Shown: positions 18,434 through 41,274 of the stretch, piece by piece
How the letters are laid out: every line of letters starts with the position of its first letter
Position numbering within the stretch: position 1 is the stretch's first letter
Origin: Podarcis vaucheri
Lineage: Eukaryota
Reading direction: 5' to 3' (one strand)
DNA: 64,000 nucleotides
NCBI GenBank assembly: GCA_965113315.1
Contig: OZ220370.1
Translations under genes and position numbers: made by a program
Notes under the pieces: model-generated
What the model was told of the DNA's origin: nothing
What the model saw: the letters and a program-made list of their open reading frames with translations, nothing else
Databases searched by the model: none

Positions 18434-18559
18434 TAAGGTAAAGGGACCCCTGACCATTAGGTCCAGTCGTGGCCAACTCTGGGGTTGTGGCGCTCATCTC
18501 GCTTTATTGGCCAAGGGAGCCAGCGTACAGCTTCCGGGTCATGTGGCTAGCATGACTAG
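18434..18559 (-). mobile_element. Sauria SINE 3' fragment
   Basis: aaggtaaagggacccctgaccattaggtccagtc...cttccgggtcatgtggc; reverse-similar to 38820-38948. Confidence 0.85.
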
Positions 18560-35937: not shown

Positions 35938-36640
35938 CAGTGGTACCTCGGGTTACCGTATTTTTCACCCTATAGACGCACTTTTCCCCCTCCAAAAATG
36001 AAGGGGAAATCTGGGTGCGTCCTATGGTGCGAATGCAGGCTTTTGTTGAAGCTTGGAGAGCAAGAGGGGTTGGTACGCACCGACCCCTCTCGCTCTCCAG
36101 GCTTCAGGAAGCTATCAGCAAGCCTGGGGAGCCCGCGGGAGTTCCCGCAGGGCTCTCTAGTGCGGATAGCAGCCTGCTTCCCGGAGCACGCGGCACGCTG
36201 AAAGAGCGCCTGGCACTTGGGAAGACATCCGCAGCCTAGGCAGCCCTGCGGGAGTTCCCGCAGGGCTCTCTAGGCTGCAGATAGCAGCCTGCTTCCCGGA
36301 GCGCGGGGGGCCCTGTCCGCGAGGCTTGCGGATAGCAGCCTGTTCCGGGGGCTGGGGTCGGAGGAAGCACGCGGCTGGGGGGAAAATAATTTATTTTTAT
36401 TCATCCCCCCCGAAACAAAAAACCACAACGAGGTGCGTCCTATGGGCCAGTGCGTCCCATAGGGCGAAAAATACGGTAAGTACTTAATTTGTTCCGGAGG
36501 TCCGTTCTTAACCTGAACCACCACTTTAGCTAATGTCACGATTTCTGTGCTTATCCTGAAGCAAAGTTCTTAACCTGAAGCACTATTTCTGGGTTAGTGG
36601 AGTCTGTAACCTGAAGCGTATGTAACCTGAGGTACCACTG
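35938..36640. mobile_element. Tigger/pogo-like MITE (host element; same family as 15138-15334, inverted), interrupted by a nested element
   Basis: TA|CAGTGGTACCTCGGGTTA ... TAACCTGAGGTACCACTG|TA. Confidence 0.88.
35956..36476. mobile_element. Nested non-autonomous Tc1/mariner element (Tc2/pogo-like CCGTA termini)
   Basis: TA|CCGTATTTTTCACCCTATAGACGCAC ... GTGCGTCCCATAGGGCGAAAAATACGG|TA, with a CpG-rich interior containing internal repeats. Confidence 0.88.
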
Positions 36641-37323
36641 TATATTCAAAGCACACATTAGTAAAAATCAGGAAGAAACGTGAAATGCTCCTTGAGCATG
36701 TCACACTCATTAGTGTACTATTTATGGTGAAAAGCAAGAAAGCTAGCCAAATTTTGGCATTGTTTACGATGCAGCCTTAATTACGAATTACCAAGTGCAT
36801 TATAGAAATACAGCAGCCTCATGCTTCATTGCTTAGTTTGTATTCCTCGCCCTTTCATTGTAAAGATTTTTTTGAAAAAAGATAGTTTTCTATAATGCTG
36901 TTTTTGAAAGCTCAAAATCAGCCTTTTAAAATTGTATTTGTTTTGGGGACACTATGCTTCATATTTCATGCAGAAAGCATCCCAGAGAACATGTCCTTTA
37001 AGTTCACATCCTCTTTGCTGTTTCCACATTTAGCTAATAGGATATTTCTGATTTGTTCCTGGGTTCACAGTAGATGTAACAACTTAAATGATGCCAGCAT
37101 TGTGGAGAGGGAATATCATCATGTTTTGTTAAGTCTTTGTGAGTTTTCCATTACTTTTAGGTATAAAATACTAGGCAAAGGTTAGACCAATCCATTTATG
37201 TCACGCATCCATCACTCTGTTAATTCCAAACATAGAGTAAGATTCCCCCCCCAAAAAAAAACCCAATGTTATTTTATTTAACAAAAATTATATACCAATT
37301 AACTATAAATAGAACCTCTAAGG

Positions 37324-37509
37324 CAGGGGTTGTCAACCTGGTCCCTACCGCCCACTAATGGGCATTTCAGGATTCTAGGTGGGCAGTAGGGGGTTCTATG
37401 GCACAAGCTGAATCCTCCTTCCATCGAGCACTGGTGGGCCATAAGGAAATTTTACCATCAAGAAAGATGCATTAGTGGGTGGTAGGTTTAAAAAGGTTGA
37501 CTACCCCTG
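37324..37509. mobile_element. hAT-type MITE
   Basis: TIRs CAGGGGTTGTCAACCT...AGGTTGACTACCCCTG and a perfect 8-bp TSD ctctaagg. Confidence 0.9.
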
Positions 37510-37691
37510 CTCTAAGGGGTTTACAACCCCACCCCATAAAATATACAATACCATTATCAATAACAGTCATAGTCAAAAGCAAGTTTTGAAAAATAGTTCA
37601 CCTTGATCTGTTTTATGTCATCAGCATATTGATGATATCCTCACCTCATCCCACAGTGATCTCTTGCCAATGTTGGAAAATATGGGGAAAG

Positions 37692-38583
37692 TAATAGAAT
37701 TGTGACATGATCACAATTTCCTGAAGGATTCTAGTAGCTATTAATGCTGAAATCCAGTGTGCTGCAATGACTGACAGTGTCACCTGTGAGTTTCTGGCTC
37801 AATTCTTGCCCAGCCATGGTTAGATGGCCTTTACGTAGGCTGGTATCTGTGTCTCCAGTGCTTTGTGGGGATAATAGTACTATCCATTGATTTTAATGGG
37901 TCCAGTATTCAATATGACTTCAGTCAGATGCAATCCAAATCATACATTGCTCATAGTTGTAGTAATAATATTCAGTGTCATAATTTGTGAAAAGGTACCA
38001 GACTATACTAGAGTAACAACCAAAGTATGTTGTAAGCCTAAGTATTAGCATTGTTCTGCCCCCGTAGGGGTCAGTTATTTAGTGATAGCAAATTTGTGTA
38101 TGAGTATTATGTAGAAGGAATAATTCTGCCCCTTTAAGAAAAGATAATGCCTTTCCCCCTTTTTAGACCTCAAGGCAGATTGGGAAATGTAGGTACAGCA
38201 ATATTCTAGTTTCTATTGGCTCTGCTCAGAGCGGGAAGAAACCTCCCTTTCTCTTTTGTTTCAATCCTAGTGCTTGCCTATCCAGGAAAATGGATGAACT
38301 CGCTCGTTCTTACATAACTCAACAGGGAACTTCATAAAAAGCGTCTAACCACTTAAATTTTCCTAACTTGTAACATGAAGTTAACGTAATTTGCAGGAAA
38401 TCATCATGAACCTGGCACATGCTAAATTGTAGTTAGTGAATGTAGTGTACATGCAGCAGGATATTTTTATTCTGAAAATAGTAGCCTACCGTGCCATAAA
38501 ACATGGCTTAACAGTTAGAACATTTTGCACTAGGATGGTAGAAATCTCAAAACACTGGTTTGTATCCAACTAAGTCATATTAA
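37692..38583 (+). repeat. Copy 1 of an ~890-bp direct duplication flanking the Sauria SINE
   Basis: taatagaattgtgacatg...tatccaactaagtcatattaa, ending 1 nt before the SINE 5' end. Confidence 0.97.
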
Positions 38584-38584
38584 T

Positions 38585-38948
38585 GGGACGCGGGTGGCGC
38601 TGTGGGTAAAAGCCTCAGTGCCTACGGCTTGCCAATCGAAAGGTCGGCGGTTCGAATCCCTGCGGCGGGGTGCGCTTCCGTCGTTCGGTCCCAGCGCCTG
38701 CCAACCTAGCAGTTCGAAAGCACCCCCGGGTGCAAGTAGATAAATAGGGACCGCTTACAAGCGGGAAGGTAAACGGCGTTTTCGTGTGCGGCTCTGGTTC
38801 GCCAGAGCAGCGATGTCACGCTGGCCACGTGACCCGGAAGTGTCTTCGGACAGCGCTGGCCCCCGGCCTCTTAAGTGAGATGGACGCAAAACCCTAGAGT
38901 CTGGCAAGACTGGCCCGTACGGGCAGGGGTACCTTTACCTTTACCTTT
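38585..38948 (+). mobile_element. Full-length Sauria SINE (tRNA-derived head, (ACCTTT)n tail)
   Basis: Starts gggacgcgggtggcgctgtggg (A box), has the ggttcgaatccc B box, retains many CpGs, and ends gggtacctttacctttaccttt. Confidence 0.93.
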
Positions 38949-39835
38949 AATAGAATTGTGACATGATCACAATTTCCTGAAGGATTCTAGTAGTTATTAA
39001 TGCTGAAATCCAGTGTGCTGCAATGACTGACAGTGTCACCTGTGAGTTTCTGGCTCAATTCTTGCCCAGCCATGGATAGATGGCCTTTACGTAGGCTGGT
39101 ATCTGTGTCTCCAGTGCTATGTGGGGATAATAGTACTATCCATTGATTTTAATGGGTCCAGTATTCAATATGACTTCAGTCAGATACAATCCAAATCATA
39201 CATTGCTGATAGTTGTTGTAGTAATAATATTCAGTGTCATAATTTGTGAAAAGGTACCAGACTACTAGATTAACAACCAAAGTATGTTGTAAGCCTAAGT
39301 ATTAGCATTATTCTGCCCCCATAGAGGTCAGTTATTTAGTGATAGCAAATTTGTGTATTAGTATTATGTAGAAGGAATAATTCTGCCCCTTTAAGAAAAG
39401 ATAATGCCTTCCCCCTTTTTAGACCTCAAGGCAGATTGGGAAATGTAGGTACAGCAATATTCTAGTTTCTATTGGCTCTGCTCAGAGCGGGAAGAAACCT
39501 CCCTTTCTCTTTTGTTTCAATCCTAGCGCTTGCCTATCCAGGAAAATGGATGAACTCGCTCATTCTTACATAACTCAACAGGGAACTTCATAAAAAGCGT
39601 CTAACCACTTTAATTTTCCTAACTTGTAACATGAAGTTAACGTAATTTGCAGGAAATCATCATGAACCTGGCACATGCTAAATTGTAGTTAGTGGATGTA
39701 GTGTACATGCAGCAGGATATTTTTATTCTGAAAATAGTAGCCTACCGTGTCATAAAACATGGCTTAACAGTTAGAACATTTTGCACTAGGATGGTAGAAA
39801 TCTCAAAACACTGGTATCCAACTAAGTCATATTAA
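38948..39835 (+). repeat. Copy 2 of the ~890-bp direct duplication
   Basis: Begins at the SINE tail. Differs from copy 1 by about 15 substitutions and 4 small indels (+3, -2, -1, -4) by manual alignment. Confidence 0.97.
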
Positions 39836-41073
39836 ACTTAAACTGATTTAAATCAATAAGCTTAGGTTAGTCAGTTCCATTGCAGTGGTTCCAACTCTGT
39901 GTATGACTTAGATGCCACCCACTGAATGTGGCTTTCCATCTCTATGGGAAGAGATAAGCAGCATCCCCAGGTTCTAGTAATCCTTCTTATTCAGAATGTC
40001 CTCTACAAGCTTTTTGACCATCAAGGTCACAAATGGAATGGGCACCATTAGGTAATTCTTCCTGAGGGGTGAAGTAACATGGCTGCAAATGCTGCCCAGG
40101 AGGGTTTGGTCAGGGGCTTTGATCCCCGCTGGGACAGACAGAACCAGAAGGAAGGATAACAGCTGTGAGCAAGACTGTGGCTTGGCATGGTTATCAGGAA
40201 CCCAGCATTGCAAAAGGAAGGTCCCACCTCTTTAGGGAAAATGGGATTTGCTTAGTTAGTGGAAGGAGGCTGCAAGCTTTATCATGGGAATGTGGTAAGA
40301 AATATTAAGACCTTATGCTTACCTGTGTAAAGAGGAAAGGATCCAAGGTAGGTTGATCACTCCAGATGGCACAAGGACCAGTGTAGAACTGGAAAATGTC
40401 ACCTGTGTTGGGAGAGCAAAAAGTTAATGTTGACTGCAATGGGAAAAAGCAGAATGGTCACAAGAATGGAGCAGCTTGAGAATGGGCTATGATTCAGGAT
40501 AAAGGTGGGATACAAGGAGCAGTGTACAAGGAGCAGAGGGATACAAGTAGCTCAGCTCAGGAACCTTCTTATGCCTAATTTTCCTCATAATAGCTTAATT
40601 CCCACCCCACATGCCCATTTTTCATGTTCTTTCAATAATGTTGTGGCCAGTTCAAGCCCATTGAGTGGTTTCCACTTCCTTTTATCCTTCTCTGCCTACC
40701 AGAGGGCCAGGGGGGATGATTTAACCCATGGATTGTAGAAATAAAGAAACAGTGAATTTAACTTTCTTCTATCTAGTTCTTTGACAAATTTTCTTTTCCA
40801 TGCTAAGTCATGGCTTAGTTTCTAGCATTCATTGTCACAAACGTCCAATATAAAATTGCTGTAGCATTCCACTCAAATATTTGAGTGCATGTTATCGAAA
40901 GAAGGTGTTTCTTCATTGACCAACAAACACTGCAGCTTTCCGCAGTGATGGATGACCATCCTTGACTTGGTTAAACCTCTGTTGGATTGTCTCTACAACA
41001 GAGTGCTGGGTATGCTGTGGAAGATGAAAAAGTGGCCTAATCTTACCTTTGACTTCTTTGCTTTCACTTTCAG

Positions 41074-41274
41074 GAGTTGGAATTTTCCAACCTGTTTGCA
41101 GTCCTGCATTGTATCCACTCCTTCTTTGCGGCCAAAGTGGCTTGTTTGGACCCACTCTATGTTGGCAGTCAGGCCACAGCTGCTGCTACTGCTGTTACTG
41201 CTGCTGCTGCTGCTACTACTGGTGCTGCTGTTGCTACATCTTCTGGCACTAGCAAATTGAAGTATACGACTTGA
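41074..41274 (+). CDS. SNTG1: Gamma-1-syntrophin terminal coding exon (ELEFSNLFAVLHCIHSFFAAKVACLDPLYVGSQATAAATAVTAAAAATTGAAVATSSGTSKLKYTT*)
   Basis: Acceptor ctttcactttcag|GAG, TGA at 41272-41274. Carries the LHCIHSFFAAKV SU-domain motif and a C-terminal KYTT as recalled for SNTG1 rather than SNTG2. Confidence 0.96.
   Translation, partial: ELEFSNLFAVLHCIHSFFAAKVACLDPLYVGSQATAAATAVTAAAAATTGAAVATSSGTSKLKYTT

Follow-up and report, generated by a model that had tools for sequence, protein, structure and literature searches.

The window analysed here, i.e., a stretch of 64,000 nucleotides of the lizard Podarcis vaucheri (GenBank assembly GCA_965113315.1, contig OZ220370.1), contains a full-length, apparently tRNA-type short interspersed element (SINE) of the Sauria type that is bracketed by two direct copies of a non-coding, intron-like block of approximately 890 bp. 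The block is termed U, its upstream copy U1 (37692-38583) and its downstream copy U2 (38948-39835), with the insert at 38584-38947 lying between them. The copy-SINE-copy anatomy is real, and both the SINE and the duplication are derived. The two most likely belong to the same event. We propose a single round of target-primed reverse transcription with a giant target-site duplication (TSD), in which the SINE complementary DNA (cDNA) would have been joined to a top-strand end 892 bp downstream; we regard this as the probable origin of the locus, with considerable room left for doubt.

Anatomy of the duplicated block and the inserted SINE

The U1/U2 pair was recovered by repeat search as three collinear blocks whose copies lie 1256-1259 bp apart. 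In a global alignment, U1 (892 bp) and U2 (888 bp) share 870 matches. Of their 15 substitutions, 9 are transitions and 6 transversions, and 4 indel events (+GTT, -TA, -T and -GTTT in U2) take up 10 columns. This amounts to a p-distance of 1.7% (Poisson 95% interval 0.95-2.8%), or ~98% identity. An earlier reading of the letters, here called the original prediction, had described a full-length SINE bracketed by a direct duplication of ~890 bp, and the repeat search and the alignment bear this description out. The outer boundaries are sharp (37691 G versus 38947 T on the left, 38584 T versus 39836 A on the right), and the block edges meet the SINE ends with one extra nucleotide on the 5' side and none on the 3' side, where a 2-nt microhomology or overlap is found. 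The inner ends of the direct duplication coincide with the 5' end and the 3' tail of the element, as in a giant TSD, and the order of block, element from 5' end to tail, and block again is the topology of a target-site duplication.

No further copy of U was found within the window, and no other direct repeats of at least 80 bp lying within 6 kb of each other were found in the whole 64 kb, so that U1/U2 is the sole near-tandem duplication; the window has no N letters. The duplicated DNA holds no open reading frame longer than 53 amino acids, and since it is non-coding, no functional consequence is expected at the locus. The possibility that U is itself a long terminal repeat (LTR)-like or transposon repeat was considered and rejected: U is single-copy in all runs and has no second copy elsewhere in the window.

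The SINE carries an A-box-like sequence TGGCGCTGTGG at 38595 (10/11 match) and, at 38649, an exact B box GGTTCGAATCC; ARAGORN and Rfam, applied to the SINE region, returned no tRNA or family call. Its GC content is 61%, and its 34 CpG dinucleotides correspond to an observed/expected ratio of 1.01 versus 0.18 for the whole window. Approximately 15,700 raw reads lose similarity immediately before 38585, which places the 5' end of the family at that position and marks the T at 38584 as extra. In all four sequencing runs compared (four lizard species, see below), the depth over the SINE is roughly 1e4-1e5 times that of the unique flanks. Sauria SINEs are described with a tail of (ACCTTT)1-4, with (ACCTTT)1-2 in Podarcis muralis (PMC13295347, table 4). 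The studied element shows an (ACCTTT)n tail, a high copy number and a length of 363 bp compared with about 350 bp, and its tail, length and abundance agree, on sequence grounds, with the description that Nakatsuka and Ohshima 2026 give of the Sauria SINE (PMC13295347). It is full-length from the family 5' end to the (ACCTTT)n tail, as expected of target-primed reverse transcription and not of filler captured at the DNA level. No other full SINE copy that could serve for a local consensus and for dating is present in the window, only a 122-bp fragment at 18435-18556. The coordinates of the locus are collected in Table 1.

Table 1. Features of the duplicated locus, with positions in the window
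Feature	Position	Strand	Remarks
Left boundary, putative first (bottom-strand) nick site	37677..37697	+	...GGGGAAAG then TAATAG; block opens T then A
U1, upstream copy of unique DNA, 892 bp	37692..38583	+	single-copy in relatives except internal low-copy repeat ~38040-38347
One extra T between U1 and SINE 5' end	38584..38584	+	non-templated nucleotide, or last base of 5-bp TTAAT duplication
Full-length tRNA-type SINE, Sauria type, 363 bp	38585..38947	+	RNA polymerase III (pol III) boxes, CpG, read pile
Microsatellite-like tail	38931..38949	+	two ACCTTT units and ACCTT (to 38947); next TA common to U2 start
U2, downstream copy, 888 bp	38948..39835	+	repeat search and global alignment
Right boundary	39826..39845	+	...CATATTAA then ACTTAAAC; putative distal top-strand 3' end in ancestral single-copy state

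The locus in related lizards

Parts of the stretch occur in 20 indexed sequencing runs, which come from eight studies and represent at least eight coded organisms. The comparison covered 4,601 letters (36500-41100) and four of these runs, i.e., organism D (run X15), organism B (X17), organism E (X5) and a set of raw reads (X23). Computed from the listed pieces outside high-copy elements, the divergence from the window is 0.86% for D (25 differences in 2909 letters), which is the closest relative, 1.86% for B (57 in 3065) and 3.4% for E (107 in 3135). The raw reads of X23, at ~1x coverage and from a species 3-5% divergent, are uninformative for depth and junctions.

In organism B, one contig (37489-38177) runs unbroken from the left flank into U, and another (39452-41100 and beyond) runs equally unbroken from U into the right flank; in organism E, the contigs 37482-38224, 39502-39851 and 39822-40028 pass both outer boundaries without a break. 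At the end of U1 (38348-38501) the depth is 8.3 in B and 2.7 in E, and at the start of U2 (38964-39117) it is 0 in both. The contig sets of B and E each add up to exactly one U, with neither a SINE junction nor a branch. The GTTT at 39813 is present in B and in E, and the GTTT deletion of U2 is therefore derived. B and E thus represent the empty single-copy site, from which it follows that neither the SINE nor the duplication is ancestral. The empty allele that the original prediction had anticipated in related lizards, with one copy of the block and no SINE, was accordingly found in two species by contigs and by depth. Intermediate alleles would carry only the duplication or only the element; B and E lack both. 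Depth summed over the bins of U1 and U2 scatters too widely to serve as a measure of copy number: in B and E, which are single-copy, it comes to 1.0-2.4.

Organism D presents a different picture, which is read from the points where its contigs break. These contigs were built from 31-letter words, and the branch nodes fall exactly on the first and the last 30 letters of U: record 3 (37505-37721) and record 4 (from 37692) overlap on 37692-37721, which is precisely the opening 30-letter stretch of U; record 6 stops at 38583; and record 7 opens with 8 letters that do not fit U2 and then aligns from 39814 into the right flank. The start of record 7 lies 30 letters before the end of U in its GTTT-bearing form, being placed there by the 8 leading letters, and a path with GTTT leads in D from U to the right flank. 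The end of the left flank and the start of the right flank are unbranched (records 3 and 7). Breaks at both ends of U mean that the start of U has a second predecessor and its end a second successor. As far as contig ends can tell, this pattern would be the one predicted by the arrangement left flank-U-X-U-right flank (L-U-X-U-R), unlike that of a simple heterozygous insertion. The most economical explanation is that one chromosome of D probably carries the duplication and the other the empty allele. Fixed differences from the window in the left flank show that D is not the assembled individual. At 40694-40783 it shows two half-depth haplotypes, of which one is identical to the window; they lie 8 substitutions and 1 indel apart over 90 bp, which indicates a very high local heterozygosity in the group.

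A low-copy repeat lies inside U at 38040-38347 (39296-39603 in U2), with a depth of ~5-15 times that of the flanks in the runs. Its paralogous contigs are recognized by a G at 38110 and an AAA insertion at 38121, and the contigs of all relatives break inside it.

Origin of the duplication

Under the proposed single event, Sauria SINE RNA would have been reverse-transcribed by the machinery of a Bov-B long interspersed element (LINE) of the RTE clade. A bottom-strand nick between AAAG and TAATAG would have provided the primer, its TA pairing with the tail of the RNA, while the top strand would have been left uncut at the usual distance of 7-15 bp downstream. cDNA synthesis would have reached the 5' end of the RNA and added one extra nucleotide, and the full-length cDNA would then have been connected with a top-strand 3' end lying 892 bp downstream, behind ...CATATTAA. 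The sequence fits two possible sources of that distal end, a remote nick in the same duplex and an end belonging to the sister chromatid or homologue. Fill-in or replication would finally have placed U on both sides of the SINE. The insertion signature of Sauria SINEs is Tn-TA, i.e., the duplication opens with T then A and a TTT is found ~10 nt upstream (PMC13295347). U opens with TA and so matches the first-nick part of this signature.

Several observations weigh against this reading. The TTT of the family signature, which is a statistical one, is missing at -8 to -13, where AAATATGGGGAAAG precedes the block. A 5-bp TTAAT is found at 38580-38584 and again at 38947-38951, so that a competing short TSD flanks the SINE, in disagreement with the original prediction, which had seen no short conventional TSD; a 5-mer match of this kind arises in ~0.4% of random position pairs. 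Outside the assembly there is no molecule or contig that spans U1-SINE-U2, the junction contigs being hidden by the pile of SINE sequences; what stands at X in D is for the same reason only a candidate SINE. The depth of the U contigs in D (72-76) equals that of the flanks (64-76) and is not raised 1.5-2x, which makes any reading of zygosity and copy number there provisional.

The TTAAT repeats flanking the SINE keep a two-step origin alive, in which U was first duplicated in tandem by a microhomology-mediated process via TAA, and an ordinary Sauria SINE inserted later on the U-U junction with a 4-5-bp TSD (TTAAT or TAAT). We consider this sequence of events unlikely, though it deserves serious weight. 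The TTAAT pair, given its low probability by chance (~0.4%), speaks for it; the extra T at 38584 would be accounted for with no untemplated base left over; the end of U (..TTAA) and its start (TAAT..) have TAA in common, like junctions made by microhomology-mediated end joining; and the relatives, with the single-copy site of B and E and the contig breaks of D, fit it equally well. Against these points stands the small target, as the insertion would have had to strike a window of ~5 bp. Young tandem duplications are themselves scarce, with one in the 64 kb examined here and ~70-90 per human long-read genome (PMC9996862). The rough estimate for such a hit is ~1e-5 to 1e-6 per insertion. A duplication of 4-5 bp is short for the RTE clade, whose TSDs are mostly 7-15 bp (PMC6007223). 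The U-U junction would have been no better a target, since it likewise has no TTT at about -10. Part of the TTAAT coincidence could moreover reflect a preference of the endonuclease; on the cleaved strands, TATTA would stand just ahead of either cut or within one base of it. By rough estimate, the single event is three to four times as probable as the two-step origin. The original claim that the SINE insertion made the duplication is supported in part, in that the topology, the TA start and the empty site in relatives are best explained by a single event, and is weakened by TTAAT.

The remaining explanations appear much less probable. Unequal homologous recombination between SINEs inserted in the same orientation at the U-right flank boundary on one allele and at the left flank-U boundary on another, with the crossover inside the SINEs, would give the same final structure (L-U-SINE-U-R) from two ordinary SINE junctions. 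It would also explain U1 and U2 as allelic lineages (e.g., the A at 37820 in U2 and in a contig of D), in a group with locally high heterozygosity (40694-40783). We regard it as very unlikely: three events would be required, with the two parental insertions segregating side by side, no parental allele was seen (the flank ends of D are unbranched, and neither boundary carries a SINE in B or E), and the TTAAT repeat is left unexplained. A false duplication created in the assembly by joining two haplotypes at a heterozygous SINE insertion is marginally less credible again. The 1.7% difference between the copies lies within the local allelic divergence of the closest relative, and the only raw reads at hand, which are few (~1x) and of a divergent species, offered no spanning molecule to set against such an error. 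The junctions are nevertheless seamless, biologically typical and free of N, the junction from tail to U start is impossible from any simple haplotype pair, and the independent sample D breaks exactly at both ends of U and not at the flank ends. The least probable explanation, in our view hardly to be entertained, is template switching at the DNA level, i.e., a replication-based tandem duplication in which a SINE from elsewhere was copied as junction filler. Templated insertions are known in general at duplication junctions; here the filler would need to begin exactly at the family 5' end and to stop exactly in the tail, and the TA start of the block fits endonuclease-dependent priming instead.

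Precedents, dating and neighbouring repeats

Events of this kind are already known from experiments with LINE-1 (L1) and R2. The original prediction had assumed that target-primed reverse transcription leaves TSDs of tens of bp at most, a limit contradicted by published duplications from >100 bp to kb for L1 and R2 (PMC5223499, PMC13486585, bioRxiv 10.1101/2024.12.14.628481, PMC7058536). L1 duplications of >100 bp make up <10% of events in HeLa cells and 57-91% in cells deficient in nucleotide excision repair, and such repeats may later recombine according to the authors (PMC5223499). Tandem duplications of 1-10 kb in L1-expressing clones and tumours are regarded as large TSDs (bioRxiv 10.1101/2024.12.14.628481). 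The L1 cases resemble the studied locus in that a direct duplication of the target, between hundreds of bp and kb in size, has an element with its 3' tail at its junction, and they are put down to a far second-strand break or to replication from the reciprocal end (PMC5223499; bioRxiv 10.1101/2024.12.14.628481). They differ in that the element here, a pol III SINE, ends in (ACCTTT)n instead of poly(A) and is proposed to be mobilized in trans by an RTE-clade (Bov-B) LINE, and in that they arose in somatic or cultured cells, whereas the present allele arose in the germline of a wild lizard and persisted.

The R2 protein without second-strand nicking yields duplications of ~1 kb (PMC13486585). 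In these PRINT assays, duplications of ~1,000 bp replace the precise junction when protein-mediated second-strand nicking is lacking, a size class that matches the 892 bp found here; that system consists of an engineered avian R2 protein acting on ribosomal DNA in human cells, whereas a failure of nicking at the present locus is deduced from its outcome. Bridging of an L1 cDNA to the sister chromatid gave a tandem duplication of 22.6 Mb (PMC7058536). [quoted passage not shown] Both mechanisms put forward in the original prediction, a distant second nick and chromatid bridging, are thus retained as possible routes, and neither is new, each having been published for other elements. Ordinary Sauria SINE insertions share with the studied one a length of ~360 bp, a probable tRNA-type head, an (ACCTTT)n tail and a block opening with T then A (PMC13295347, PMC6007223), and differ from it by TSDs of 7-15 bp compared with 892 bp and by the TTT at about -10 that is missing here.

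What is new is the setting, i.e., a trans-mobilized SINE of an RTE-clade LINE in a lizard germline, persisting in nature with an empty site in the sister species. Large TSDs have so far been described in cell culture, in repair mutants, with engineered R2 and in tumours, and a germline example that is apparently neutral and still polymorphic would show that misplacement of the second-strand nick occurs in nature and that its product survives. Surveys of Sauria SINE TSDs searched only 10-49 bp (PMC13295347, PMC6007223), and for natural SINE insertions with kb-scale duplications in human long-read surveys we found only distributions reaching 18-30 bp. SINE TSD searches have a blind spot, ending at 30-49 bp and leaving such events uncounted. 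A wider conjecture, which we offer as rather doubtful, is that Bov-B-driven SINE insertion in lizard germlines may regularly misplace the second-strand nick and so give rise, steadily and in nature, to tandem duplications of 0.1-1 kb, part of them segregating to this day, that searches of 10-49 bp have missed; the locus would then be the first documented natural example, with the empty allele kept in sister species.

Dating the event by the divergence of U1 and U2, in the manner of LTR dating, is unsafe here. At the sites where the direction of change can be read, the derived states are 38064 G, 38102 G and 38439 A in U1, and 37820 A and the GTTT loss in U2. The A at 37820 in U2 is also found in the U1-type contig of D, while B and E have T; some of the differences are therefore standing variation or the result of exchange between alleles or copies, and not mutations that followed the duplication. 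The clock proposed in the original prediction is therefore unreliable here. The U1-U2 divergence of 1.7% is close to that between the window and B (1.86%) and twice that between the window and D (0.86%), yet the allele is seemingly still polymorphic in D. Either the polymorphism is old, or the allele was introgressed, or U2 was different from the outset. The intact CpG content of the SINE says that it is probably young, judged from base composition, and does not choose among these histories.

Other repeats were observed in the window and in the contigs compared with it. The fragment at 18435-18556 (- strand) is a 5'-truncated 3' end of Sauria type, 74% identical to SINE positions 232-358, with a tail ...CCCTTTACCTT behind which the flank opens with AATAG, as it does at the studied SINE. 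A Bov-B open reading frame was searched for beside this fragment and none was found, and the window has no Bov-B LINE for a comparison of 3' ends. Contigs from elsewhere in the genome join the SINE tail (38940-38949) to the SINE head (38581-38585) with spacers of 1-18 nt, indicating that Sauria SINEs often insert right behind the tails of older copies. At 36200-36643 lies a very high-copy element with a GC-rich 5' part, repeated AACCTGAAG-like motifs and an end at 36642/36643, whose depth is above that of the Sauria SINE in all four runs. In many contigs the final ~25 letters of this element run straight into the SINE head at 38585; these fusions may be tandem SINE arrangements elsewhere or misplaced tails. 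Another high-copy element (37270-37577, depth 1e4-1e5 times that of unique DNA) has 30-nt inverted arms at 37344-37373 and 37457-37486 and looks like a miniature inverted-repeat transposable element (MITE). A short tandem repeat with a 21-bp period and 2.8 copies, (GCT)n/(ACT)n-like, is located at 41179-41237.

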